From IMG/VR virus record IMGVR_UViG_3300023202_000247, positions 124,001-188,000 of that record: a stretch of 64,000 nt of DNA; one strand, 5' to 3'. The notes beneath the pieces are model-generated. The model did not search any database and was not told the origin of the DNA. It saw only the letters and a program-made list of their open reading frames with translations. This document shows positions 31,681 through 49,517 of this stretch, in pieces. Position 1 is the first letter of the stretch. Every line of letters starts with the position of its first letter. The translations under genes were made by a program, and so were the position numbers.

Positions 31681-32920
31681 TAAATATATCATCCTTGGAG
31701 ATGTTCACCTTGGTAAAGGTTTGAAGATGGGAAAGCCTGGTGACAATGGTGAACTCAACAGCAGGATAAAAGACCAAATAAAGTTGCTTGATTGGACTTT
31801 GGACAGAGCGCTAGAACATAAAGCAAAAACGATATTTGTAACTGGCGATGTATATGAAGATCCACGTCCCGTTCCGGCACTGATTCGCATCTTCATGGAA
31901 TGGGTAAAGAAATGTGAAAAAAGTGAAATTTCTGTACACGTGCTGATGGGCAATCATGACCTCATCAAAAGTGGTGCTTATACCGTTTCAGCTTTGGATA
32001 TCATTCCAGCAGTAGAGTTGCCCTCAACTAAAGTTTATAAAAATGTTGAAACTCTTCACTTTGATAAAGTATCTTTTACTCTCGTTCCATATAGAGACCG
32101 TCGGTTATATGATGCTGAAACTTTGACAGAGGGTAAAGAAAAACTCTTTGCAGAGTTTGAGAAAGAACATGAGTCGGTTCCAGATGGAAATAAAAAGGTT
32201 CTCATAGGTCACTTGGCGCTAGAAGGTTCGCTCTACGTTGGTGATGAAATAGAAGATATGAGCAATGAGCTTTTTTGTTCATTTCATATGTTTTCTAACT
32301 ATGATTATGTGTGGATGGGACATATTCACAATCCACAAGTATTACAACAAAAGCCACGTTGTGCTCACGTTGGCAGTATGGATCGTTCCGACTTCGGAGC
32401 AAATGAACTCAAGTATGATAAAATCATCATCTTGATTGATCCTGATTCAAAAGAATTCTTTAAAGAAATTATCATACCTACTCGTAATTTACTAGATATA
32501 AAAATTGAAGTGCCCGATGGTAAAGATACCACTGATTTTATCATAAACTATCTTCATTCTTATGATAAAGATAATTCTCTGAAAGATGCTATAGTTAGAT
32601 TAACCATTGAATTAGAAGGCGCAGAGATTTTGAATATGAATCGAAAAAAGGTTCATGAATTCATATTAAACAATCTCGGCGCACATCACATATGTCAAAC
32701 ATCTGAATCTAGAAATATAAGTGTTGTACCTTTAAAGAAAAAAGTAAAAGATGAAAAAACTGGAGAGGATATTGAACAGGATATTCTTATTTTTTCCAAT
32801 GATATGAGTTTAAAAACTGTCATCAACACATATATTGATGCTTTGGAGCTTCCCGATGACAAAGATAGAGAATCTGTTCGGGAATTCATGCTTGATTGCA
32901 TCCAGGAGACTCAAAAATGA
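31673..32920 (+). CDS. sbcD: SbcD/Mre11-like nuclease
   Basis: GDVHLG, TGDVYE, MGNHD, GHL, MGHIH, GSM. Confidence 0.88.
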   Translation: MSDKYIILGDVHLGKGLKMGKPGDNGELNSRIKDQIKLLDWTLDRALEHKAKTIFVTGDVYEDPRPVPALIRIFMEWVKKCEKSEISVHVLMGNHDLIKSGAYTVSALDIIPAVELPSTKVYKNVETLHFDKVSFTLVPYRDRRLYDAETLTEGKEKLFAEFEKEHESVPDGNKKVLIGHLALEGSLYVGDEIEDMSNELFCSFHMFSNYDYVWMGHIHNPQVLQQKPRCAHVGSMDRSDFGANELKYDKIIILIDPDSKEFFKEIIIPTRNLLDIKIEVPDGKDTTDFIINYLHSYDKDNSLKDAIVRLTIELEGAEILNMNRKKVHEFILNNLGAHHICQTSESRNISVVPLKKKVKDEKTGEDIEQDILIFSNDMSLKTVINTYIDALELPDDKDRESVREFMLDCIQETQK

Positions 32921-35061
32921 TTCCTATAAGCTTATCGATGGTTAATTTTATGAATCATCGAAAAACATTTATAGATTTTTCTACTTTTCAAAAAGCACTT
33001 ATCGTTGCAAAATCGGATAAAGATCCGCGCGTGTCGAATGGTCTCGGCAAAACTACAGTTATTAGTGCGATTGAATATGCTATATTTGGTGAAGTTCCTA
33101 CATCAACTTTGGATAAAGTCGTTCACGATAATCAAAAAAAATGTGATGTTAAGTTTTCTTTTGAACTTGACGGGTGCATCTATCGCATAGAGCGAGCAAC
33201 AACGGCAAAAGGCAAAAGCAATCTCAAGTTTTACCAAGTTATAGATGGTAAAGATGTACCGTTGCATGGCAATCGTGTTCCCGAGACTAAAGCTGAGATA
33301 GCTAAGACTATAAAGATAAGTCATAAAGCATTTTCTCACGCTATCAAGTTTGGTCAACGTGATATCTCGCAAATTGCTGCTGAGAAAACTTCTGATAAGA
33401 GAAAAGCCATTTTGAAAGAACCGCTCAATCTTCAAATATATTCGAAGTTGGAAAAGCAGGCAAAAGAAAAGATGACCGTCATCAACAAAGATGTTCAAGC
33501 TTTGGAGGCGGTTATCGAATCTTTGGGTGACCCAAAGGCAGAGATTGTTGCAGCTGAAAGCGAATTGAAGTTTAGCTCATCCGAAATAGATTCTAAAAAA
33601 GCAACCATACTAAAACTATCTAAATCAATAGATAGTAAAAGAGAATCCCTCGAATCGTTGAAAAAGATGTTATCTTCTTCAGATACTGAAATACATGATA
33701 AAATTTCTCAACTTGGTAAGCGTTCAAAGGAACTGAAAAATATAATTGAATCATCCAATGAACGAGTTCAATCATCCTCAGATGAAATCAAAAAACAAAA
33801 AGCTAAACTGGCATCTCTTCGCAAGACACAGGCTGAGCTAGAAGCCAAGTTATCAAAGTTTGATGAAAATAATTTGCCTGATGCAGATGACTTGTATAAA
33901 AAATTAGATAAAGTATCCAATGATGAAATTGTTGGCGTCAAATTGTTAGCAAAGTTGGAGGCTGAATTTGATCAGGCAAATAAAACGCTCCCTAATGGTG
34001 ATATTTGTTCTGCATGTATGCAACCCATAACAAAAGAACACAGAGATAGTGTCGAACAAGAAGTCAATAAAGTATTAGAAGAAAAAGCTAAACAAATTAA
34101 ACATATCAAAACTAATCTTACAAAGTGTAAGAATAAAAAAGATAGTTTGAAAAAACAGCATGCTCAAGCTTTGAAAACAATTAGTGAATATAAAGATGCA
34201 AAACAAGCAAAACAACGTTTGATAAATGACATTTCTAGTAGCGAAGAATATATTCAAGCTGCTGAAAAACGTATGAATGTTTCTGATGCAGAGGTTAAAA
34301 CGGCTCGTAATGAATTGGAAACTGTTGGGAAAGACCTCGAAACTTTAAAAGATAGCGCCAAAAAAAGCAATGTTGCTGAATTAAATAACAAGATATTTTC
34401 AGCAACGGATGAGCTTCGGGTTTATGAGCGTTCCTTAGAAAATGTAAATGATGAATTACACAAGGCACAGGAACGTTTCGGTTCGGCCACTGCACGCATG
34501 GATTCTGCTAAAAAGAATTTGGAAAAACTGAATAAAAATAACAAACAGTTAAAAGATAAAAAATATCAGCAGAAAATTGGTCAAATTGGAACCCACGCAT
34601 TTTCTTCCGGTGGTATTCCAACGAATATCATTTATAGTGTGGTAAACGAACTTCAATCTGAAACCAACTCTTGGCTCTCAGAGATTAGACCCGACCTCGG
34701 TATTCAGTTTGATGCTGAGCTGAACCTCATCTTCACCGTCTCTGGAAGAGAAAAAGAGTGGTCACAGCTTAGCACGGGTCAACAAATGTATGTTACATTA
34801 GCTATAAAAATTGGTTTGTCTAGAATAATTCAAAAAAAGGTTGGAACGGATATTAGGTTCATGCTTTTGGATGAAGTAGACCAGTCTTTAGATGCCTCCG
34901 GCGTTGAAGCGTATCAAAATATCATGAGAAAGCTCGAAAACGATTTCAAATTACTTGTTGTGACTCATAATGATGAACTCAAAGATAGCTTTTCACATGC
35001 TATATTAGTTGAGGGGAACACTGAAGAGGGCGTTAATGGTACAGTTGTTAGTAGTTGGTGA
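32917..35061 (+). CDS. sbcC: SbcC/Rad50-like ATPase
   Basis: NGLGKT Walker A, long coiled coil with CSAC hook, LSTGQ signature, LLDEVDQSLD, VTH. Confidence 0.9.
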   Translation: MIPISLSMVNFMNHRKTFIDFSTFQKALIVAKSDKDPRVSNGLGKTTVISAIEYAIFGEVPTSTLDKVVHDNQKKCDVKFSFELDGCIYRIERATTAKGKSNLKFYQVIDGKDVPLHGNRVPETKAEIAKTIKISHKAFSHAIKFGQRDISQIAAEKTSDKRKAILKEPLNLQIYSKLEKQAKEKMTVINKDVQALEAVIESLGDPKAEIVAAESELKFSSSEIDSKKATILKLSKSIDSKRESLESLKKMLSSSDTEIHDKISQLGKRSKELKNIIESSNERVQSSSDEIKKQKAKLASLRKTQAELEAKLSKFDENNLPDADDLYKKLDKVSNDEIVGVKLLAKLEAEFDQANKTLPNGDICSACMQPITKEHRDSVEQEVNKVLEEKAKQIKHIKTNLTKCKNKKDSLKKQHAQALKTISEYKDAKQAKQRLINDISSSEEYIQAAEKRMNVSDAEVKTARNELETVGKDLETLKDSAKKSNVAELNNKIFSATDELRVYERSLENVNDELHKAQERFGSATARMDSAKKNLEKLNKNNKQLKDKKYQQKIGQIGTHAFSSGGIPTNIIYSVVNELQSETNSWLSEIRPDLGIQFDAELNLIFTVSGREKEWSQLSTGQQMYVTLAIKIGLSRIIQKKVGTDIRFMLLDEVDQSLDASGVEAYQNIMRKLENDFKLLVVTHNDELKDSFSHAILVEGNTEEGVNGTVVSSW

Positions 35062-35064
35062 AAT

Positions 35065-35778
35065 ATGATTATAGGAATACACGGAAAAGCCGGTTCGGGT
35101 AAAGATACATTTGCAACATATTTGTCAGAAATGGCTAAAACAGAGCATGGTTTTAGAGGGTGTAAGATTGCATTTGCAGATCCCATCAAACGCTATGCAA
35201 AAGATGCTTTTGAATTTTCGGATGAACAGCTTTGGGGAACATCTGAAAAAAGAAACTCTCCGGATAAAAGATATCCGAGACAACATGATTTTAACGATTC
35301 GGGAGAATGTTTTTGTTGTGGTGCACATCGCGATAGCGATTCTCAATGTTATCTTACTCCAAGATATTCTCTTCAACTGATGGGAAGCCAGTGGGGACGT
35401 AAGTGTTATGATGATATCTGGGTTCAAAAGGCTGTGAACACTGCGAATCATTTGCTTGAAAATGATTCGGATTATGTGCCACAACATGGCACGATAAATT
35501 CTTCAATTTTTACAAAACATGATTTCATAAATATCTCTGATTTGAGATTCGAGAATGAAGCTCGCGGCTTGAGACGGGCCGGCGCTCTCTTGGTAAAAGT
35601 TAAGAGGCCCATCTCGTCATTGAGCGGCGCTAGTGCAAATCATGATAGTGAATGGGGCTTGCCAGATGAATTGTTTGATGAAATTATATTAAATGATTCT
35701 GTCCTAGATTCTTTCTTTGAAAAGACTCGAAACTTCTTGGGCAGAATAACACCTTCTATTCTAACCAATAGGCATTGA
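35065..35778 (+). CDS. deoxynucleoside monophosphate kinase
   Basis: IIGIHGKAGSGKDT, AFADPIK, PRYSLQLMG, SDLRFENE, HDSE. Confidence 0.85.
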   Translation: MIIGIHGKAGSGKDTFATYLSEMAKTEHGFRGCKIAFADPIKRYAKDAFEFSDEQLWGTSEKRNSPDKRYPRQHDFNDSGECFCCGAHRDSDSQCYLTPRYSLQLMGSQWGRKCYDDIWVQKAVNTANHLLENDSDYVPQHGTINSSIFTKHDFINISDLRFENEARGLRRAGALLVKVKRPISSLSGASANHDSEWGLPDELFDEIILNDSVLDSFFEKTRNFLGRITPSILTNRH

Positions 35779-35834
35779 TTGATATATTCTTAGATAGAGG
35801 AGGTTGAACATCACATGATGTAAGCAGGTACAAA

Positions 35835-36140
35835 ATGCTCAAAGTAACTACAAGAACTTGTGAAGAATATGAATCTATTCTTCGCTCTCGCGGAGAAGCT
35901 GGATTGTATAAATATGCTTTGGGTCTTGGTGTAATTAATAGGGTTGATTATGCTTTTACAGAGGTGATGTTGCTTGATAAGTCGGACGCTTTTTTCTCTT
36001 TAGCCAGAGGTACGGGCAATGACAATTATTTCGTAATAGGCAGAGTATTACGAAAGGCTGCACACCGTTTATATAGATATGCTCATAAAGATAACGAAGA
36101 GCATCCTGTTAATGGACGCTTTCTCAATCTAGTAAAGTAA
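35835..36140 (+). CDS. hypothetical protein
   Basis: 101-aa ORF. Confidence 0.55.
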   Translation: MLKVTTRTCEEYESILRSRGEAGLYKYALGLGVINRVDYAFTEVMLLDKSDAFFSLARGTGNDNYFVIGRVLRKAAHRLYRYAHKDNEEHPVNGRFLNLVK

Positions 36141-36160
36141 AATGATAGCATTAGTATATG
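36139..36160 (+). promoter_or_regulatory. putative late promoter motif
   Basis: AAAAT-gata-GCAT-tagtat-ATG. Confidence 0.45.
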
Positions 36161-37144
36161 TCCGTAATTTCAATAACAATAACAGAAAGTGATGTAGAAA
36201 TCATTGCAGGTATACCTCAAACCGTATCACTTTCGTCCAATATTCCAGCTTCTATTTTTTATACGCTTGATGGTACAGAACCAACTACGTCAAGCAACGT
36301 TTACACTACGGCGCTATCCATTCCAACCAATCAAAACGCGGTAACTCTCAAAGTATTTGCAACTGATGGGGTAAATAGTTCACCAATTTTGACTTGGGAG
36401 TTCAAATCAGATTTCATCGGAGATAGAAGGCCCAGAGATGAAGTCACGAATATTGATAATACATGCAATAAAAACTCTATTTTTGCATCGAGAACCCAAT
36501 CTGGTTCCGCTATTTATGGAAATACTGCCGGCATAACAGTTGACGCTCCAGATTTGCCAGGAATTGGCGATGGTTATGATGGTACTGGTACTAGCAAGTT
36601 TGCTGATTATACCGACCTACCGCTCGATGATTATGAAATCATTTACTCTGAAACAAACTATATAGGAGAAACTGGTAAGGGGCTCGGAACATTACCGGCA
36701 CACGTAACTATACGAATTCCATTTCCCGTTCAAGAACCATCAGTTGGCACCGGCTCCAACAAAACTTCTAGTTTGCTTTTTAATCCAAAAAGTTTGGTTA
36801 TCTTTCAGGATAGCCGTGAACCTGATCCGATACCAACAGTCAACAGACCTTTCTTCTCGTTAGAGAATCAAGAAAAAGCGCGCTATGGTGTTGGTTATTT
36901 TACCACAGCGTTTGAAGGTAATACGGTTCATGGATCAGCTTTAAAGAGTCAATACAATCCAACTGACGGAACTATAACATACTATTATAGAGATTCTTTA
37001 ACTAACAGATGGATTATATCTAAGACGCCTTATACTCCGCAGCCACAGGGAATAAACAATTTGTCTAGAATTGTTTTTGGTCGAGGTGAGGGCGTCGGAA
37101 AAGTATTTAAGTGGATTCTGTTCAAGTACAGAACACTATGGTAA
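36158..37144 (+). CDS. probable virion protein with chitobiase/FN3-associated Ig-like domain
   Basis: IFYTLDGTEPTTSSNVYT...TLKVFA; T/S/G-rich. Confidence 0.65.
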   Translation: MSVISITITESDVEIIAGIPQTVSLSSNIPASIFYTLDGTEPTTSSNVYTTALSIPTNQNAVTLKVFATDGVNSSPILTWEFKSDFIGDRRPRDEVTNIDNTCNKNSIFASRTQSGSAIYGNTAGITVDAPDLPGIGDGYDGTGTSKFADYTDLPLDDYEIIYSETNYIGETGKGLGTLPAHVTIRIPFPVQEPSVGTGSNKTSSLLFNPKSLVIFQDSREPDPIPTVNRPFFSLENQEKARYGVGYFTTAFEGNTVHGSALKSQYNPTDGTITYYYRDSLTNRWIISKTPYTPQPQGINNLSRIVFGRGEGVGKVFKWILFKYRTLW

Positions 37145-37150
37145 GATAAC

Positions 37151-37990
37151 ATGAAAATAACAGCCAGCATAAGAGGCGGCTATGATGATACTAATGCAGA
37201 CCTTACTCTTTCTGTAAGTAAAGCTCAATCATTTGATAAATGTGCCGCTAAGTTCAAATATTCTTATATAGAAAAGCTTCCCAAGAAAACTTGGGACTTT
37301 CATATCTTTGGAAAATATCTTCACGATATACTGGAAACGTTTCATCAAAAATATATAGATGGTGATGACCGACCCTCGAACAAGGTGATGACAGAATGTT
37401 TTTCTTCTAGTATGGAACGCTTTCCAGATTTAACTTCTGAACAAAAGGCAGAAGCTTTTCAAATTTGTAAACGTTATTTACAGTTGATGGCTAATGAAGA
37501 AAAAAATGGTACACTGCCAGAGATTTTATCGGTTGAAAAATCATTTTTCATAGATGTTAATGAACAAGTTCTCATCAATGGCTTCATTGATAGAATTCAA
37601 AGAGATAATGATGGCTTGTTACATGTGGCAGATTATAAAACATCGAAAAGTGATCGATATGTCAAGAATGATTTCTTTCAATTGATGACATATGCATTTG
37701 TTTTGATGACGGAGGAACCAAAGCTCGAAAAAATTCGAGCATCGTATATAATGTTACGTTTAGATTGTAAACACATTACAAAAGAGTTTACTAGAGATGA
37801 AGTTATGCCAATCGCAGAAACATTTCTAGAATACGGAGAAAAAATTTCAGAAGAGAAGATTTGGAGACCCAATCCACAATTTCTTTGCAAATATTGCGAT
37901 TATCTTGATATTTGTTCAGATGGCAGAGATTATCTTGACGCTCGAAATATAGAGCATGACTCCCACAGTTGGGGGATTCAATCATGGTAG
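37151..37990 (+). CDS. PD-(D/E)XK nuclease, Cas4/AddB/RecB-like
   Basis: LSVSK...C, G..LH, VEK, GFIDRI, DYKT, QL..Y, CKYC...C. Confidence 0.85.
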   Translation: MKITASIRGGYDDTNADLTLSVSKAQSFDKCAAKFKYSYIEKLPKKTWDFHIFGKYLHDILETFHQKYIDGDDRPSNKVMTECFSSSMERFPDLTSEQKAEAFQICKRYLQLMANEEKNGTLPEILSVEKSFFIDVNEQVLINGFIDRIQRDNDGLLHVADYKTSKSDRYVKNDFFQLMTYAFVLMTEEPKLEKIRASYIMLRLDCKHITKEFTRDEVMPIAETFLEYGEKISEEKIWRPNPQFLCKYCDYLDICSDGRDYLDARNIEHDSHSWGIQSW

Positions 37991-38226
37991 TAGCTGCCTC
38001 GAAACAAAAGGATGGTATATGCCAAAAAATGAAGAGACGGTTGTTAATGATGCAATTCAATTTTGGAGAGGTTACACCCAAGCAATGGAATCCTTTTTGG
38101 ATAATAACAAAGAAAAGTTAACGGATAGTATATACAAATATGTTACTGATGATATAAATCATGCATCAGATATGGTTGAAGAATATAGAGATAGACTTCA
38201 CATCTTGAAAAGAAAGAAAGTTAAAA

Positions 38227-39480
38227 ATGCAAGAACAAATAAGAAATGACAAGTACAATATTGATTTTGAAAAGTTGGAAGATTGCAAATTCAAAATTTA
38301 TTATGAGTCTAATAAAAGTTCTGTAAAAGAAAAGAGAAGTGAGGCGATTGAGGAGCTTCGTAAGCTTCCAATACCGGGCTTTCGTCCAGGCAAAGCTACA
38401 AATCAAGCTATCGAAAGTAAATTCAGTCAAAAGATTGATGATTATATCGTCAATCAACTAGCTGGTTCCGCTGTAGATGCTGTTCTTTTCGAAACGCAAT
38501 GGAAAACGATTGGGCGGCCTAGAATTGAAAAGTATTCTGTTGATGATGGCAAATTCAATTGTGAGTTTGTTTTGTGTACACGTCCAGCAGTAGAGTTGCC
38601 AGAGTATCAATCTTTTGAAATTCCAAAGCCAGATGTTAATGATGACACTGAAGGACGTGTGGAAAAGATGCTTGGTGATATCCGCATGCGTCACGGTGAT
38701 ACAGAGCTGTATCAAGAGGGTGACTTCGTTGAGCGTGGAGACCAAATAACATTGGATATCAAAGCTACATGCAATGATGTTGTAATTGATGACTTTTGTG
38801 AAAATGGAATTCTTTACCAAGTTGGAAATGGTTGGAAAGACATTTTAGACTTCGATGACAATATCTTGGGAATGATGCCTGATGATATTCGAGAGTTCGA
38901 GGTAACGGTTCCAGTATATGGAAGGATAGATATAAAAGTTACGTTGCATGCTGGTACCAAGAAAAAGATGGCGGCGTTGACCGATGAACTGGCTCAAAAA
39001 GTCGGGCTGGAAAATGTTGATGATATCAAAGAGAAGGTGCGTGTCGTTGTAAAGCAAAATATAGATCAAGAACGCTCTTATCTCGTTGCTGAGCAGGTTC
39101 AAAATAGGCTTTTGGATGAGGCCAAGGTTGATGTGCCAAAATGGCTATTATCTTTAGAGGCGCAAAATGCTGCATCTCAAAGCGGAGTGGAGTTCGAATC
39201 CCTTTCTGATGATGAGAAAAAGATATTTGAACAAGATGCTGAGAAAAGAGTCAAGATGAGTCTCATCTTTGAAACTATTCGTGATGAACAGCCTGAAGCT
39301 GTGCTTAGCGATGAAGAGTTGAGACAAGCTGTGTCACAACAGCTCATGGCTCGTGGAATTGATCCGGAAAAGTTCCTCGTCGAGCAGCATGCACAAGGTC
39401 AACTGTTGGGTATGATGGCTGCGTTGCAACATCAGTACACATTACAATGGCTAATTGATCAGGTTACACTGATTGATTGA
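38227..39480 (+). CDS. tig: trigger factor
   Basis: IPGFRPGKA ribosome-binding signature, FKBP-like middle (GDQITLD, FDDNILGM), helical C domain. Confidence 0.85.
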   Translation: MQEQIRNDKYNIDFEKLEDCKFKIYYESNKSSVKEKRSEAIEELRKLPIPGFRPGKATNQAIESKFSQKIDDYIVNQLAGSAVDAVLFETQWKTIGRPRIEKYSVDDGKFNCEFVLCTRPAVELPEYQSFEIPKPDVNDDTEGRVEKMLGDIRMRHGDTELYQEGDFVERGDQITLDIKATCNDVVIDDFCENGILYQVGNGWKDILDFDDNILGMMPDDIREFEVTVPVYGRIDIKVTLHAGTKKKMAALTDELAQKVGLENVDDIKEKVRVVVKQNIDQERSYLVAEQVQNRLLDEAKVDVPKWLLSLEAQNAASQSGVEFESLSDDEKKIFEQDAEKRVKMSLIFETIRDEQPEAVLSDEELRQAVSQQLMARGIDPEKFLVEQHAQGQLLGMMAALQHQYTLQWLIDQVTLID

Positions 39481-40714: not shown

Positions 40715-43399
40715 ATGATTAATTTACCTTATGTTAGTTTACACAATCAAACTACTTTTTCTACGATGGATGCATTGGTTAGCGTCCAAGAATTGTGTGA
40801 GCTGGCAAAGAAAATGGGACATGAGGCGGTGGCCATTACCGATCATGGAACCTTAGCATCCATGTGGGATGCCTATAAAATAGGTAAAAAGATGGGAATC
40901 AAAGTGATTCCCGGCTGTGAATTCAACTTCGTCGAGTCTGTCGACAATGATGAACCTTTACGTCACATAATTCTTTTGGCAAAAAATGCCACGGGTTATC
41001 ACAACTTACTGCTTCTCAATAAATTAGGCTTTGATAATAAAGCTATCATGTTCAAGTCTGCAATTCCGAGAATTGATTGGAAGCTTTTAGAAGATCACAG
41101 CGATGGTTTGATTTGTACCACAGCTTGTGGCAACGGAATCATCAGTCAGCTCATCATGCAAAAGAAACATGATGAAGCTAAAGAGTCTTTGAAAAGACTC
41201 AAAGATATATTTGGTGATGACCTAGCTATCGAATTGCAAGCACATGCTCTCGTACGAAAAGAGACGGCTTATTCCGGAGCTATTGATCAAAGGTTCATCA
41301 ACCTAAACCTTAAAAAGCTTTCAGAAGAACTCGGCATTAGAGCAATCGTTACGACGAATACACATTATGCTGATAAAGATGATTATCGTGCTCACGATAC
41401 ACTTCTAGCAATTAGAAGTGGTCAAACTGTATTCTCCGGAAATCGATTGAAATACAATGTCAATGATTTTTATTATAAACATCAGTTGGAGTTAGCATCA
41501 TTCTTTGTTCGTTTGCGTGGGTTGTATCCACAAAGCTTTGTTGAAAGTTTGTTTGAGAATACAGTTTACTTTGCAAACAAGTGCGAAGATCCCGAATGGA
41601 TTGATTTGAAGTATTCCAATCCGACCGGGAAGGAGTTGCCAAAATTTCCAGTCAGAGATGAGCCAAATCTAGATGCATTCGATGCTTGGGCAAAAAACAA
41701 TGCTCCCGGTCTTGATGATGACGTTGCGTACTTGAGGTATCGTTGTGACCTGGGATTGAAAAAGATGATCCCAGAATCAAAACATGATGAATACAAAGCA
41801 CGTTTGAAGGAAGAGTTCGATGTTATCGAATATCACGGCTTTAGCTCTTACATGCTCATTGTTGCCGATTTCATTAATTATGCAAGAAAAAATGGTATTC
41901 GCGTTGGACCCGGAAGGGGATCGGTAGCTGGCTCGCTGATTGCGTATCTATTGGAAATTCACGTAGCAGACCCCATCAAGTATGGTCTCATTTTCGCTCG
42001 TTTTCACAACAAAGAGAAAACATCATTTCCAGATATTGATGTTGACTTTGCTCCATCGGGACGTGACGAGGTACAAAACTATATTAGACAAAAATATGGT
42101 GAGGACTATGTTGCTCATGTTTCCAATGTTAATACTATAACGCCGAAGGTGTATGTAAAAGACATTGCCAGAGCACATGAGTTTGGTGGTGATAGAAAAG
42201 AGGCGGTAAAGATTGGAAATGAAATTGCTGACTTCATGCCTTCAGGCCCGAGCGCTCCCAAAAGCTTGGAAAAGGCCAAAGAGGAGTATGCTTTGTTTGC
42301 AGAGGCAATGGTTCAATTTCCGGAGCTTGCGGAGTTTGCCGATAAAATCGGAGGCAAGCCAAGAGCTTGGTCTACACACGCCGGTGGTTTAATCATTGGT
42401 GCCCGACCATTACCGGGTCTCGTTCCAGTACGTCGAGATGTACACGACTCCACGGCAATCGAGTATGACAAAGACAAGGCTGAAGAAATTGGCTTGGTCA
42501 AGATGGATACTCTCGGGTTGGAAACGCTCGACATCATAACCGATACCTATAAGTTGATTAAAGCAGTGGGTAAGGATGTACCACCAGACCCTCCGAGATT
42601 TGATGAATATGACAAAGAAACTTATGATTTAATATCTTCTGGTGATACCCTTTGTATTTTTCAGTTGAGCGGTATTGCGTCCACACTTTGTCAGTCAATC
42701 AAACCAAATAGCATCGAAGAGATTAGTTATATCAATGCGCTCGTACGTCCAAGTGCAAAAGCAATTGTTAAAGATTTCATTGCAACTCGTGAAGGAAAAA
42801 AGAAAGTAGAATTGCTGGATTCTTCTTTGGAACGTGCCTTTGGTGAAACATATGGGTTCGGACTATATGAAGAGTGTTTGCTTTATTTGGCTCAAGATGT
42901 TGCAGGATGGGATCTTCACTCAGCTGATAGGCTGAGAAAACTTACAAAAGAGAAAGGTAAGAATCCCAAAAAAGTTGCTGGGTGGCGTGAAGAGTTCATC
43001 AATGATGGTAAGAGCCAAGGAATTGATGAACATATTGTTACTAAGATTTGGGATGAAGTTGTAAATGGTTTCCAAGGATATGGGTTTAATAAATCATTAT
43101 ATTCTTTGCAGAAAGTTGATACATTTACTAAGGATGGTCAATTTTTAACATCCAAAGCAATTAAATATATAAGTTCAAATGAATATGTGCGTTCTCGTGA
43201 TGAAAAAACCGGTGTGGACATTTATGTTAGGGTAATTGATAATCATGACCACGGAAAGTTAGAAGTTGTTGATATTGAATTAGAAACTGGAGAAAAGGTT
43301 AGATGTACTATGAATCATAAGTTTAGAACAGTTGAAACCGGTGATATGGTACCTCTTCATCAAATTATTGAGAATGACTATTCTATAGTAGTGAAATGA
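40715..43399 (+). CDS. dnaE: DNA polymerase III alpha, N-terminal part fused to N-intein
   Basis: PHP (AITDHG, PGCE), GPGRGSVAGSL, FPDIDVDF, STHAGG, LVKMDTLGL; extein ends at GYGFNK. Confidence 0.95.
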   Translation: MINLPYVSLHNQTTFSTMDALVSVQELCELAKKMGHEAVAITDHGTLASMWDAYKIGKKMGIKVIPGCEFNFVESVDNDEPLRHIILLAKNATGYHNLLLLNKLGFDNKAIMFKSAIPRIDWKLLEDHSDGLICTTACGNGIISQLIMQKKHDEAKESLKRLKDIFGDDLAIELQAHALVRKETAYSGAIDQRFINLNLKKLSEELGIRAIVTTNTHYADKDDYRAHDTLLAIRSGQTVFSGNRLKYNVNDFYYKHQLELASFFVRLRGLYPQSFVESLFENTVYFANKCEDPEWIDLKYSNPTGKELPKFPVRDEPNLDAFDAWAKNNAPGLDDDVAYLRYRCDLGLKKMIPESKHDEYKARLKEEFDVIEYHGFSSYMLIVADFINYARKNGIRVGPGRGSVAGSLIAYLLEIHVADPIKYGLIFARFHNKEKTSFPDIDVDFAPSGRDEVQNYIRQKYGEDYVAHVSNVNTITPKVYVKDIARAHEFGGDRKEAVKIGNEIADFMPSGPSAPKSLEKAKEEYALFAEAMVQFPELAEFADKIGGKPRAWSTHAGGLIIGARPLPGLVPVRRDVHDSTAIEYDKDKAEEIGLVKMDTLGLETLDIITDTYKLIKAVGKDVPPDPPRFDEYDKETYDLISSGDTLCIFQLSGIASTLCQSIKPNSIEEISYINALVRPSAKAIVKDFIATREGKKKVELLDSSLERAFGETYGFGLYEECLLYLAQDVAGWDLHSADRLRKLTKEKGKNPKKVAGWREEFINDGKSQGIDEHIVTKIWDEVVNGFQGYGFNKSLYSLQKVDTFTKDGQFLTSKAIKYISSNEYVRSRDEKTGVDIYVRVIDNHDHGKLEVVDIELETGEKVRCTMNHKFRTVETGDMVPLHQIIENDYSIVVK
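43094..43396 (+). mobile_element. split intein N-fragment (101 aa, Ser1)
   Basis: starts SLYSLQKV right after FNK; G-x-x-E-V, IELETGEKVRCTMNHKF (block B TxxH). Confidence 0.88.
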
Positions 43400-45381
43400 C
43401 TAATGACTTAACGCAAAAATTCTTAAATAAGATCCCTAAACAATATCGTGAAAATATTGTGATCTTATCACCAGAAAAAGGTGGCAATTCAAGAGTAGAA
43501 TATCTGCATCCGATTTGTGGATGCAAAACAACCAGTACATTGAAGACTTTTGTTAAGCGAAAGTCTTTTGACAGTTGCTTAAAATGTTCCAATCAAAAAA
43601 ACTTTAACTACTATAAGAGTAAAATTGCTTTTCCGAATAATATAGATTTACTGGAGCCATTTCACGGTGGAGCAACAAAAGTTAGTTTCAAACACAATAT
43701 ATGTGAGTGTATAATAAACACAACATTGTCTAGACTGACCAACAGAGATCAGCTTGATTATTGTAAGAAATGCTATCAAGCATATTATTATGATTCAGCA
43801 TCAAATCTTGACAATGTAAAAATAATTGGTAAAAATAAAGGTTATAATTCTGACGCTGAGTATACATGCTCAAAATGTAGTAAAATATTTTATACGAAAC
43901 TTTCAAATCTTATTAACAGAAAAGATATTAGCAAGTGCCATGAATGCTCTAAACAAGAAACTTTAGATAGTTACTTGACGTTACTTTCTAAAGACATATT
44001 GAATAGAATAAAAGTTTTAAATCATAATGGCAGTTATTCTAGAATTAAATATGATAATCCATGCGGACATCAAACAGAATCAACTATATCTGATTTTGTG
44101 AAGCGCGAACAATTTGACTATTGTCAACATTGTTCTCAAAAAAAGAGTGTTACTGATTACATTGATTTGATTGATAAAAAGTATCATCAAAATATAGAAA
44201 TTGTTAAAGATTTGGGAGCAAAGTCTCCAATTATTTATACGTGCCCATCTTGTGGAAACAAAAGAAGATTAACTGTCAAATCACTACAACGTTTTGACGA
44301 TTGCTTGAATTGTAATAACAGTTGTCGTATTTCAAAGCAAGAAATGATTGATAATCTCAAGCCGTTTTTGAACAACATAAAAATCGTTGATGGTTTTCCA
44401 GGGCATAGAACCAGTGTTGTAACCGGTAACTGCGTTGCTTGTAATTCCAAGGTTGAAAACTATTACTTTAATTTTTCAAGATACTATACTTATTATAACG
44501 AACCAAGATGCAGTAGTTGCAGCCCAAAGAGCATAGAGCAAAAAATGCTGGCCAATTTTGTTGGGTCGTTAACAGATTTCATAGAAAATGATAAGTCAAT
44601 AATCAAATCATCAGAAACAGATCGTAACCTAGAAATCGATATTTATTGTCCTAAGGAAAAGTTTGCTATTGAATATAATGGTTTGCTTTGGCATTCCGAA
44701 AAATATGGAAAAGATAAGAATTATCATTTCTATAAAACAAGACAGTGTCAAGAGCATGGTATATATTTGTTACATATATGGTCAGATAAATATAAGAAAC
44801 ATCCAGAAATATATCACTCTATAATAAGATACTGTTTGGGTAAAATAAAGAATAGAATATTTGCAAGACGCTGTATTTTGAAAGAATTGGACAAGAATAT
44901 CTCAAGAGATTTTTTTACAACAAATCATCTTGATGGCAATGTCGGTTGTCTAAAAGCATGGGGTTTGTTTCATGATGAAAAGTTGATTCAAGCTATCTCG
45001 GTAAGGCGTGTGAGTAAGCAAAACAGTAAATACGCTTCTTATTTAGAAATTGCAAGAATGGCAACTCTTTTAAACCATTCAGTGGTTGGAGGCGAATCAA
45101 AACTGTTGAGCTTTGTTGAAAAGTTTGCTCGTGATAATGAATATGCTGGTATCTTGAATTATGTAAGTGCTGATTTTGGAAAGCCTCAACAAAATAAATA
45201 TCATTTTGAGTACAAAGGTATTACTGATGTTTCGTATTGTTATACGGATGGTAATAAAAGAATTTCTCGACAACGCCTTCAAAACAGACCTAAAGGTGTT
45301 AGTGAGCGCGCTCATGCCAATAGTTTGAATCTCTGGCGCGTTAATCTAACACCAAACTTCATTTATATATTGAATTTCTAA
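43396..45381 (+). mobile_element. free-standing homing-endonuclease-like gene: six zinc-ribbon repeats, Vsr/DUF559-like nuclease, C-terminal Mom/GNAT-like domain
   Basis: six Cys/His repeats; LEIDIY...AIEYNGLLWH; LEIARMA...VVGGESKLL; lies between the intein halves. Confidence 0.78.
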
Positions 45382-45491
45382 TGTCAAAAATAAAATCACT
45401 AAAACCGGTTGGTAAATTGCAAACATATGATCTGGAAGTTGACCATCCAGATCATCAGTATTATTTATCAAACGGAGTTTTAACTAGCAAC
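45381..45491 (+). mobile_element. split intein C-fragment (37 aa)
   Basis: MSKIKSLKPVGKLQTYDLEVDHPDHQYYLSNGVLTSN followed by Ser+1. Confidence 0.92.
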
Positions 45492-46715
45492 AGCCACTCT
45501 ACACTTTACTCTATGATATCATTTCATACTGCATATCTAAAAGCTCATTTTCCTTTAGAGTTTTTGGTTGCAAACTTGAAGAGTGAGACAAAAAAGACAT
45601 CAAACCCCAAGGCCAAGGACAATGTCTTAAAAATAAAGGACGAGATTCGTAGTCTTGGAATAAAGTTGATTGCTCCCAACGTAAACAACAGCTTGAGGGT
45701 TTACAAAATTATCACCGACAAAACGTTGATGACGGGACTCAACAGCATCAAGTATGTTAGCGATGATGCGATTGAAGATATTGTAGCTAAAAGACCATTT
45801 AAGAGCTATAGTGATTTTATTGCCAGAACAGATAGTCGCAAAGTAAGAGCCAACTCCATTCAAGCCCTTGCAGCATCTGGTTGTCTCGATGATTTCGGAT
45901 TACCACGTAAGTTGATGTTTCTTTACGCATCGGATTTTAGAAAGAAACAAAGCTCGGCTTTGAGAGCAGCCAAAAAGGCTGGTAATGATGAGTTGGTGAA
46001 GCAGATTACCGAAGATTTCGAATATCCATGGCCAGAGGATTCTGAATGGTCGGTGCAAGAACTTTTTGCCTTGGAAGAGTATTTCATGGGGGAGGGTTTG
46101 AGCGGCACGGTACAAGAACGCTATGTCGGTTTCTTCGATTCTAGCTCTATTGATTATAGACTTTTGCCCAAGATGTTTCCATATCGTCTTCTTGACGAAG
46201 ATGATAAAGTTAACAGAAAAAAGAATACACACCCAATACCAAATAGTAAAGTTCCATATTTGAAAGGAATTATAAAAAGACTATTTTCTTTTAAGGTTAA
46301 GAAAGATGATTCGCCAATTCGCGGTCAAGAAATGGCAATTATTACCATACAAGATCCATATGGAACGGATATGACTTGTATAGCGTTTCCTGATACATGG
46401 GTGCATATACAGAAGCGCATCTATGAGGATTTGTCTGGACGCTCTGCAAAACTAGATGTTGGTCTTGCTGTTGCCATGACCGGTTCGTTTCAGCACGAAA
46501 ATGAACATGTTCATTCATTCATCATTGATGATATATTGGATATACAGGAGTCTCCGGCTCTTCCAAAGGATAGAGATTCTAAAAGTATCAAACTGCCTCG
46601 TAAGAAAAAGGTTAAAGAGGACCCCGAGAAATTGGAAAAAGAAGAACTAGCTGAAATCATGGAAGATGATATGATTCAAGAGGGTTTTGTGTTTGATGAG
46701 CCGGAACCATTATAA
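45381..46715 (+). CDS. dnaE: DNA polymerase III alpha, C-terminal part preceded by C-intein
   Basis: SHSTLYSMISFHTAYLKAHFPLEF, GLNSIKYV (HhH), OB fold MAIITIQD. Confidence 0.93.
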   Translation: MSKIKSLKPVGKLQTYDLEVDHPDHQYYLSNGVLTSNSHSTLYSMISFHTAYLKAHFPLEFLVANLKSETKKTSNPKAKDNVLKIKDEIRSLGIKLIAPNVNNSLRVYKIITDKTLMTGLNSIKYVSDDAIEDIVAKRPFKSYSDFIARTDSRKVRANSIQALAASGCLDDFGLPRKLMFLYASDFRKKQSSALRAAKKAGNDELVKQITEDFEYPWPEDSEWSVQELFALEEYFMGEGLSGTVQERYVGFFDSSSIDYRLLPKMFPYRLLDEDDKVNRKKNTHPIPNSKVPYLKGIIKRLFSFKVKKDDSPIRGQEMAIITIQDPYGTDMTCIAFPDTWVHIQKRIYEDLSGRSAKLDVGLAVAMTGSFQHENEHVHSFIIDDILDIQESPALPKDRDSKSIKLPRKKKVKEDPEKLEKEELAEIMEDDMIQEGFVFDEPEPL

Positions 46716-48485: not shown

Positions 48486-49517
48486 ATGCCAAGAACAGCA
48501 AAAGTAAAACAGGATAAAGAAACAGAAGATAAAACAATAGAAGAAACAGATTCAACAAAAAACAAGCCAAAGTTTGTGCCTACCGGTATCAACATCAATA
48601 AGTTGGTGAAATCGGTCCAAGGTAGATATGCTAAGTCTAAGAAAGACAAAGATCACTCTACTGATATTTCTACTGGTAGTGAAATAAAAGTATTCAGTGA
48701 CGACGAAGATTTCGTTCTATCGGAAGACTTGCGTAAGTGGTGGCAACCTCTTACTGGGATCAAAGGGTGTCCATTTGGACGTATCGTGCAAATTGCTGGT
48801 AAACCTGATAGCGGTAAATCAACAACAGCAATGCTTTTCATGAAGGCAGCCCAAGAAGCCGGATATTTGGTAATTTTATGGGATGCTGAAAAGAAATTCA
48901 GTACTAAGAGATACGATAATAATATCGGCGGTGACAGTTCGTCACTTTTGATTACCAGAAACAAAAGTGTAATTGAGGGCGCAAAGCAAGTTCACTGGTA
49001 TATCAATGATGCTAAGTCCCAAAATCCAGATGTCAAGATTTTGGTTGTTTGGGACTCAGTTGGAGCAACGCTCAATACTACTGAAGATATCGATGATGAT
49101 AAGCAAGATTATAGTACGCAGCCTGGCGTAACGGCCAAACAAGTATCTTGGGCCATTCGAAAGTTCAATGCTTTGGCTGAAAGGTATAAGAATGCCAAAA
49201 ATGGCAGAGAAACAATATCAATTCTTTGCGTCAACCAAATTTACCAGTTGATTGGTTCTCCAGGTTCCAAAGAAAAAGGTGGAGAAGAGTTATATTATTT
49301 GTCGAGCCTGATTCTTCAGCTGACTAGAAAGTCAGATTTGATACGACAACGTAACAAGCAAAAAGTTAAATATGGTATCGTTTCGAGAGCTAAAGTTCGT
49401 AAAAATCACTTGTTTGATGGAGACGATTGTATAGCTGAATTGGAGCTAGTTGTGTCTGCAAATGGCATCGAGTTAAAAGATGAAATTTCTGATGAATTTT
49501 TAGAAGAGGATATGTGA
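48486..49517 (+). CDS. recA: RecA/UvsX-like recombinase
   Basis: GCPFGRIVQIAGKPDSGKST, WDAE, VVWDSV, NQ, GG, KVRKN. Confidence 0.88.
   Translation: MPRTAKVKQDKETEDKTIEETDSTKNKPKFVPTGININKLVKSVQGRYAKSKKDKDHSTDISTGSEIKVFSDDEDFVLSEDLRKWWQPLTGIKGCPFGRIVQIAGKPDSGKSTTAMLFMKAAQEAGYLVILWDAEKKFSTKRYDNNIGGDSSSLLITRNKSVIEGAKQVHWYINDAKSQNPDVKILVVWDSVGATLNTTEDIDDDKQDYSTQPGVTAKQVSWAIRKFNALAERYKNAKNGRETISILCVNQIYQLIGSPGSKEKGGEELYYLSSLILQLTRKSDLIRQRNKQKVKYGIVSRAKVRKNHLFDGDDCIAELELVVSANGIELKDEISDEFLEEDM

Follow-up and report, generated by a model that had tools for sequence, protein, structure and literature searches.

A fractured dnaE gene in an uncultured jumbo phage, with predicted split-intein halves on either side of a free-standing endonuclease gene

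We analysed a window of 64,000 nucleotides (nt), positions 124,001 to 188,000 of the IMG/VR record IMGVR_UViG_3300023202_000247 (a 321-kb contig of an uncultured jumbo phage), and describe here its dnaE gene, which is divided over two open reading frames (ORFs), each ending or beginning in one half of a putative split intein, with an endonuclease gene between them. The locus comprises three plus-strand ORFs, each in a separate reading frame: ORF1 (40715–43399, 894 amino acids, aa), ORF2 (43396–45381, 661 aa) and ORF3 (45381–46715, 444 aa). ORF1 encodes DnaE residues 1–793 followed by a 101-aa N-intein (IntN), and ORF3 encodes a 37-aa C-intein (IntC) followed by the remaining 407 DnaE residues. 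The stop and start codons of ORF1 and ORF2 overlap in the sequence ATGA (43396–43399, the IntN stop codon being 43397–43399), and those of ORF2 and ORF3 overlap in TAATG (45379–45383), with 1 nt shared. A preliminary description of this DNA had reported this ORF layout, the GYGFNK, TSN and SHSTLY junctions and both overlaps, and is exact in every detail. The locus is a real and functional-looking fractured dnaE, with the following features in window coordinates.

40715 to 43093, plus strand: dnaE N-extein, 793 aa, ending ...GYGFNK; PHP, Pol III alpha and finger domains; PRK05673 positions 5–752
43094 to 43396, plus strand: N-intein (IntN, 101 aa) with Ser1, block B TxxH (CTMNHKF) and an acidic second half
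43396 to 45381, plus strand: putative homing-endonuclease gene, free-standing, 661 aa; phrog_559, phrog_3339 and 'Hef-like homing endonuclease' DNA matches
43516 to 44520, plus strand: six Zn-ribbon-like Cys modules of ORF2, presumed DNA-binding; listed by regular expression, with weak Zn-ribbon Pfam matches
44533 to 44835, plus strand: putative Vsr-like/EDxHD nuclease core, ORF2 residues ~380–480; profile match to 3r3p, conserved columns and hhalign
44845 to 45378, plus strand: GNAT/Mom-like C-terminal domain, ORF2 residues ~484–661; GCN5 profile match and Foldseek
45381 to 45491, plus strand: C-intein (IntC, 37 aa) with basic first 14 residues, block F DLEVDHPDH and terminal ...TSN
45492 to 46715, plus strand: dnaE C-extein, 407 aa and stop, beginning with Ser+1 (SHSTLY); HHH_6 and the C-terminal DnaE part
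42950 to 45600, no strand: tract of separate ancestry relative to locus L153 (the cassette with ~150 nt and ~100 nt of flanking extein); sliding identity and dS

Pfam recognizes PHP, DNA_pol3_alpha and finger domains in ORF1 and HHH_6 in ORF3. The NCBIfam DnaE model PRK05673 reaches position 752 with ORF1 residues 5–794 and resumes at position 752 with ORF3 residues 38–417 (to 1089). Because the model is continuous at position 752 across ORF1 and ORF3, the predicted DnaE exteins abut without loss, gain or duplication when the intein pieces of 101 and 37 aa are taken out, and this removal restores the conserved motif GYGFNK+SHS. The models for split cyanobacterial DnaE, PRK09532 (N fragment) and PRK07373 (C fragment), extend their alignments over the extra residues too. 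The predicted spliced DnaE is 1200 aa long, compared with 1164–1185 aa in intein-less relatives, and its N-extein is 57% identical to the intein-less DnaE of related jumbo-phage contigs. We found 31 further IMG/VR contigs, many of them 250–480 kb, that encode a DnaE ~57% identical to that of the window. An alignment to intein-free DnaE, suggested in the preliminary description as a check, agrees with the proposed junction: in 29 of the 31 contigs the two flanks are adjacent and in frame (GYGFNxSH...), with 24 distinct junction sequences. Searches with the intein halves recovered ~50 distinct loci in which this intein family occupies the identical insertion point. The observation is not due to chance, because both the 29 empty-site contigs and the ~50 loci with homologous halves identify the same point.

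IntN opens with SLYSLQ and contains the motif CTMNHKF, and the first 37 residues of ORF3 end in ...LTSN, directly followed by SHSTLY. The C half scores 21.3 bits against TIGR01443, passing the curated cutoff of 15.6. In single-sequence searches of the PDB, the N half matches chains of the Npu DnaE intein (E-value 4e-7) and the C half matches the 36-aa Npu C-intein, colinear from Met1 (E-value 0.012). Profiles built from 31 alleles match solved DnaE inteins with E-values of 3e-14 for the N half and 3e-6 for the C half, the latter again colinear from Met1, and the IntN profile also matches the structure of the phage gp41-1 intein (E-value 2e-7). The residues expected to carry out the chemistry are retained across the 31 aligned alleles. 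Intein residue 1 is Ser in the window and Ser, Cys or Thr in all alleles, mostly Ser; in block B (T72-M-N-H75) the His is invariant and the Thr nearly so; D17, H22, D24, H25 and N37 of IntC are invariant; and the Ser+1 extein residue is invariant or nearly so. The net charge is +4 for IntC residues 1–14 and −6 for IntN residues 36–101, values consistent with the electrostatic capture reported for split inteins of DnaE (PMC12707363). A structural model of the contiguous allele L065 (our own handle, as are the other L numbers below), computed with the N pieces as the alignment, has a HINT fold at a pLDDT of 94.5; among PDB structures it is closest to the Npu DnaE intein (TM 0.81–0.85, E-value 1.5e-10), with other inteins next, and the L065 intein shares 46% identity with the IntN and 65% with the IntC of the window. 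The evidence supports reading the extra residues as a split intein that matches the cyanobacterial DnaE split inteins and that would splice, in agreement with the preliminary description, which had pointed to the 101/37 fragment sizes and a C-intein resembling Npu and Ssp DnaE.

The IntN and IntC pieces were aligned separately (alignments A4 and A5), and alignment A8 contains the contiguous alleles and the IntN pieces only. A joint MAFFT alignment of IntN, IntC and contiguous alleles (A3) was discarded: it laid the second half of IntN (...VELETGEKV.CTMNHKF) over IntC (...YDLEVDHPDHQYY). This overlay may echo an internal duplication in the HINT fold, and it is a practical trap for aligning split halves. 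IntN contains one Cys, Cys71 (43304–43306), which is the only Cys of the intein, directly precedes the block B Thr and is invariant in the 31 alleles. Strictly speaking, the intein is thus not cysteine-free, as it has this conserved non-catalytic residue. We found no second copy of the intein or of the endonuclease within the 64-kb window.

The middle gene, ORF2, had been called endonuclease-like, and the homology searches sustain this assignment. ORF2 matches the PHROG homing-endonuclease families phrog_559 and phrog_3339, and its DNA sequence matches genes labelled 'Hef-like homing endonuclease' in Campylobacter, Lak and Bacillus phages. For the last 282 residues of ORF2, 17,701 representative relatives were found at E-values up to 1e-3. 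A single-sequence PDB search with the C-terminal half found nothing meaningful; a profile of 51 relatives (A6) was needed, and it matches I-Bth0305I (3r3p) with an E-value of 2.3e-4 across the AIEYNG..WH.. block and GCN5-type acetyltransferases with an E-value of 3e-4 over the C-terminal 170 residues. Residues E413, D415, E426, H433 and D464 fall in invariant or nearly invariant columns; the explicit alignment to 3r3p comprises H433 and neighbouring residues only, and the assignment of D415 is inferred. An AF2 model of the C-terminal part (nuclease and GNAT-like) has a pLDDT of 96.2. Its top PDB match by Foldseek is phage Mu Mom (8bv8, E-value 9.5e-6), followed by many GNAT acetyltransferases, and in the viral library BFVD it matches phage homing endonucleases at TM 0.8–0.88. 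The N-terminal 375 residues hold the Zn-ribbon-like modules (residues 41–64, 103–126, 158–184, 223–246, 283–306 and 346–375), which are presumably DNA-binding and resemble the N-terminal module of the L030 endonuclease. No curated Pfam or NCBIfam family was detected for the nuclease or the GNAT-like part, and Pfam gave no NUMOD match in ORF2. The four closest full-length relatives of ORF2, ~37–69% identical, all lie inside a fractured dnaE. At the same site, a commoner type of endonuclease (alignment A7) carries a Ros/MucR-like C2H2 finger and lacks a GNAT part; the nuclease cores of the two types are homologous (hhalign probability 96%, E-value 4e-9). These results support the assignment of ORF2 as a probable Vsr-like/EDxHD homing endonuclease, with dnaE as its presumed target. 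The GNAT-fold domain (44845–45378), to which Pfam and NCBIfam models are blind, has as its best solved match Mom of phage Mu, a DNA-modifying enzyme.

We consider it highly probable that this fractured dnaE is co-transcribed, is trans-spliced to a 1200-aa DnaE and carries an endonuclease that spreads as a selfish element. The three overlapping ORFs would be transcribed together, and the two downstream ORFs would be translated by coupling. Between the ORFs we found no terminator-like site on the plus strand, and promoter-like sites of the sigma-70-type consensus were not above shuffles. The products would be DnaE(1–793)-IntN, the endonuclease and IntC-DnaE(794–1200). IntN, being acidic, would then pair with the basic first residues of IntC, the two halves together adopting the fold of a class-1 HINT domain, and trans-splicing would proceed from an N-O acyl shift at Ser1 through transesterification to Ser+1 and cyclisation of the terminal Asn to an O-N shift, giving a 1200-aa DnaE with GYGFNK-SHS restored. 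ORF2 presumably cuts dnaE alleles without the endonuclease gene in co-infecting phages, and repair would copy this gene into them, usually along with both intein halves and part of the adjoining extein.

Several points weigh against this interpretation. When both halves were searched with Hint-domain models, as had been suggested, the C half was positive as described above, while the N half fell just short of its curated cutoff in TIGR01445 (22.8 vs 24.5 bits) and stayed below that of Pfam Intein_splicing (20.3 vs 35.8 bits). Sequence alignments to solved inteins leave out the first ~30–40 residues of IntN. At the penultimate position the intein has Ser and not the usual His, although the best-matching Npu IntC chain likewise ends in Ser-Asn. 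The HINT fold was modelled on the contiguous relative L065, not on the two halves of the window itself. A Shine-Dalgarno-like motif is absent at both downstream starts, though such motifs are rare in this phage in general and many of its genes lack one. Finally, both splicing and cleavage are inferred here. The sub-threshold scores of the N half would also suit a different explanation, in which the DnaE fragments work unligated and the intein halves, dead for splicing, serve as a tight heterodimerisation interface. There is a precedent in the NrdA of Aeromonas phage Aeh1, which is reported to be split by an endonuclease gene and to reassemble non-covalently (PMC3045599; PMC2677866). However, all the chemistry residues are kept in the 31 alleles (the residue-1 nucleophile, TxxH, the block F Asp and His, the terminal Asn and Ser+1), and the contiguous inteins of L065, L078 and the Rhodococcus phage Grayson, which share the catalytic residues, must splice to make DnaE. 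We therefore regard the unligated dimer as unlikely, and favour trans-splicing.

At the same insertion point, the alleles related to the split intein of the window fall into the following states.

Contiguous mini-inteins: L065 and L078, and the more distant L145 and L146
Split, no endonuclease, with a stop, 45–160 nt and a new Met: L041, L054, L072, L076 and others
Split, C-terminal endonuclease remnant only: L047/L059 and L151
Split, endonuclease of 320–430 aa: ~27 loci including L002 and L030
Split, window-type endonuclease of 650–690 aa: the window, L038, L153, L154/155 and L156
Halves 4.7 kb apart with six unrelated ORFs between them: L042

The search of related phages for intein-less, contiguous and split alleles that the preliminary description had proposed has thus found all three states. 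Its further idea, that the locus may capture how an endonuclease invading an intein splits an essential gene, does not hold in the sense of a fresh event: the split state is old and widespread, and it is the type of resident endonuclease that has been exchanged. At least four endonuclease architectures occur at this split point. In addition to the window type and the commoner type, more distant alleles carry NUMOD3 with a Vsr/DUF559-like domain (three loci) or NUMOD4 with HNH_3 (one locus); these NUMOD endonucleases belong to a distant subfamily at the same site (L070, L094, L097 and L079; YSFNK|C...VTSN|SHS). The overlap between the endonuclease and IntC ORFs is 8 nt in both L002 and L038.

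These alleles also bear on two trivial explanations of the layout. The window comes from a metagenome assembly, and one could imagine an assembly or sequencing artefact in which one contiguous large intein with a nested endonuclease domain was broken into three frames by indel errors. The stop/start overlaps are clean, though, and the IntC Met lies exactly at the start of Npu IntC; the same three-gene layout recurs with divergent sequence in other samples (L038, L153, L154, L156, L002, L030 and ~25 more), and members of the endonuclease family occur as free-standing genes in thousands of other contexts. An artefact of this kind is highly improbable. The other explanation is that the endonuclease ORF sits in a self-splicing intron whose removal yields one contiguous dnaE mRNA. 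EDxHD endonucleases are indeed known in group I introns (I-Bth0305I in recA; PMC3239194). Against this, there is no Rfam match in the 64-kb window at gathering thresholds (and no tRNA), nor in 42800–45800 at E-values up to 1; there is zero non-coding sequence between the ORFs, and an mRNA from which ORF2 had been removed would still carry the two halves in different frames; and in the endonuclease-less loci L041 and L054 a stop and a new start still separate the halves. As far as sequence can tell, the probability of such an intron is close to nil.

The relatives show several further variations on the arrangement. Locus L154 (2473–5546) has endonucleases in tandem, a C-terminally truncated one of the common type (306 aa) followed by an intact one of the window type (681 aa); similarity runs past the stop of the truncated gene, and a 104-aa ORF precedes the C-intein. 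The tandem suggests one endonuclease replacing another. In L042/L043 (1017–6111) six plus-strand ORFs lie between the dnaE halves, one of them with TadE/Tad-like and DUF7305 matches; this layout may represent an intermediate on the way to unlinked halves like those of cyanobacteria. In L034/L035 (5225–6004) the N-intein ORF is extended by ~165 residues that have no Pfam match, and it ends at the C-intein start in another frame. Putative N-terminal endonuclease remnants in L063, L053 and L156 were rejected: these matches fall within the 3' end of IntN but in a different frame, at the overlap with the L002-type endonuclease ORF. The residue at position −1 of the junction (43091–43093 in the window) is mostly Lys, Arg or Gln in occupied alleles and Met or Val in nearly all intein-less relatives (GYGFN[M/V]SH; L003–L032 junctions), a contrast that could reflect lineage history, a requirement of splicing or resistance of the empty site to the endonuclease. 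The IntN tree is poorly resolved, with 19 of its 28 inner branches below 80% support. It supports only that the endonuclease was lost at least twice; a single origin of the window-type endonuclease is possible, being recovered in 70% of bootstrap trees.

As to distribution, a scan with the C-intein profile of one genome each from 185,579 bacterial and archaeal species gave 2 matches, one in a 3-kb contig of a metagenome-assembled genome and one weak, which makes the intein family essentially phage-borne. A second contig from the same metagenome as the window, IMGVR_UViG_3300023202_000102 (L037/L114, 194 kb), has the same intein family at the same site with an endonuclease of the common type, its IntN being 63% identical. 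One sample thus contains both donors and recipients for cassette exchange.

The locus was compared in detail with L153, which stems from another sequencing run and is closely related to the window phage. Nucleotide and amino acid identity, synonymous divergence (dS) and the ratio of non-synonymous to synonymous divergence (dN/dS) are as follows.

Exteins next to the cassette: 92.8% nt, 97% aa, dS 0.37–0.39, dN/dS 0.035
IntN: 75.3% nt, 73% aa, dS 1.6, dN/dS 0.10
Endonuclease: 72.9% nt, 69% aa, dS 1.67, dN/dS 0.12
IntC (37 codons): 82.9% nt, 81% aa, dS 0.81, dN/dS 0.12

With a dN/dS of ~0.1, both intein halves and the endonuclease are under purifying selection, and silent-site divergence in the cassette is about four-fold that of the host gene: the cassette is functional and has its own history. 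Identity falls from 98–100% to 75–85% at ~42950, ~150 nt before the N junction, and recovers at ~45600, ~100 nt past the C junction. A divergent tract spilling into the exteins in this way is what co-conversion during homing would leave. However, dnaE has other divergent patches relative to L153, which counts against the tract as proof of homing as such, and general mosaicism among these phages contributes to the divergence pattern. The same comparison speaks to the idea that dnaE is decaying and non-functional, the phage relying on another polymerase and the three ORFs heading for loss. The contig is 321 kb long and its polymerase content was viewed only in the window and at the loci of the relatives, which leaves some room for this idea, but the exteins are under strong purifying selection (dN/dS 0.035, as listed), the DnaE domains are all intact and dozens of divergent phages retain the split layout. 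We consider decay very unlikely; a working, fractured dnaE remains our preferred reading.

The arrangement itself, including a fractured dnaE, was already published in 2009, and the window is a clean further example rather than a new kind: Dassa et al. described 26 fractured-gene loci from the GOS metagenomes, among them DnaE-1, -2 and -3 (PMC2677866). As in those loci, which are also of phage or metagenome origin, a gene of DNA metabolism lies in two adjacent same-strand ORFs, each with a split-intein half, and a free-standing endonuclease ORF (GIY-YIG or Vsr-like in theirs) lies between the halves, its 3' end overlapping the C-intein ORF (by 6–69 bp in 15 of their loci, by 1 nt here). An upstream hairpin and a T4-late-like promoter are frequent in the earlier set, if not universal, while in the window the endonuclease ATG overlaps the dnaE-N stop and leaves no intergenic space (no search aimed at T4-late promoters or hairpins was made). 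Unlike those loci, the window locus is complete and lies in a 321-kb phage contig, and its endonuclease combines six Zn-ribbon modules with a GNAT-like domain. The phage-derived natural split inteins gp41-1, NrdJ-1 and IMPDH-1 of the 2009 study likewise come from fractured genes; they differ from the window intein in their host genes and have been characterised experimentally.

The cyanobacterial DnaE split inteins of Ssp and Npu share with the window intein the host protein, the canonical split site (101/37 here; Npu IntC has 36 aa) and the Ser-Asn end, and are the best-matching solved structures for its halves. They differ in their nucleophiles: the cyanobacterial intein has Cys1 and is followed by Cys+1, whereas the window has Ser1 and Ser+1. 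As first noted in the preliminary description, the insertion point also lies four residues further downstream, after FNK, which ends the N-extein here and with preceding Cys starts the Ssp C-extein (CFNK; PMC2664965). The cyanobacterial DnaE halves are encoded by separate genes (PMC2677866), and those of the window are adjacent with the endonuclease between them. Because insertion point, nucleophiles, gene layout and phage-borne distribution all differ, the predicted window intein is not an allele of the cyanobacterial DnaE intein, though this is its closest solved relative. A cultured actinobacteriophage, the Rhodococcus phage Grayson, shares the insertion point (gp103, MH153812; YSFNK|intein|SHS) and has similarity to IntC in blocks F and G; its mini-intein, in a protein annotated simply as DnaE, is unlike that of the window in being contiguous, with Cys1, a His-Asn end, no endonuclease gene and distant sequence similarity.

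Hef-type phage endonucleases were already placed in the EDxHD family by Taylor et al. (PMC3239194), and ORF2 shares with I-Bth0305I the nuclease core motif AIEYNG..WH.. aligned to 3r3p. I-Bth0305I is a 266-aa, intron-encoded protein in which NUMOD/HTH motifs lie at the N terminus and no domain follows the nuclease; ORF2, in contrast, has Zn-ribbon repeats before the nuclease and the GNAT/Mom-like domain after it.

What the window adds is modest but useful: a complete jumbo-phage locus, in a class of fractured dnaE genes known mostly from partial metagenomic fragments; a full evolutionary series at one site, with evidence of cassette exchange and endonuclease turnover; a Ser1/Ser+1 pair in a DnaE intein family with the canonical split; and the GNAT/Mom-like domain of a Hef-type endonuclease. 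The 2009 model holds that an intein is followed by endonuclease invasion and splitting, and then by endonuclease loss (PMC2677866). The window and its relatives show every stage of this gene-breaking model at one insertion site, from the empty site through the contiguous mini-intein, the split with endonuclease, tandem endonucleases, a remnant and the split without endonuclease to halves six genes apart, and they provide quantitative evidence that the cassette is functional (dN/dS ~0.1) and mobile (four-fold the host-gene dS). Efficient split inteins without catalytic cysteines are wanted for protein labelling, and few are known (PMC12707363); judged by sequence, this family offers ~30 naturally occurring candidates of the Ser1/Ser+1 type that are relatives of the fast Npu DnaE intein. 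Going further, and only tentatively, we suggest that the split point is a landing pad for successive unrelated free-standing endonucleases, that the cassette moves between jumbo phages as a unit and that the Ser1/Ser+1 family is a natural canonical-split intein without a catalytic cysteine. In a bolder variant of this suggestion, the modelled GNAT/Mom-like domain would be an active DNA-modifying or DNA-reading module, beyond a scaffold.

The fractured dnaE lies in a replication and recombination module, whose other genes are in 32896–39480 and 48486–49517, with genes for an SbcC-like protein (32896–35061), an exonuclease (37151–37990) and a UvsX-like recombinase (48486–49517). All but five of the ORFs of at least 150 aa are on the plus strand, and the GC content of the 64 kb is ~38%. 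The window dnaE also has an empty site, at 41920|41921 (DnaE GPGRG|S), for a second intein carried by relatives: L030 (6242–10228), L153 (~951–2305), L154 and L156 have a second, contiguous intein of the LAGLIDADG type there (GxGRG|C...HN|SVGG). Relative to L153, the ~350 nt upstream of the GPGRG|S site are the most divergent part of dnaE (63–77% identity), and the sequence downstream is 97–100% identical.

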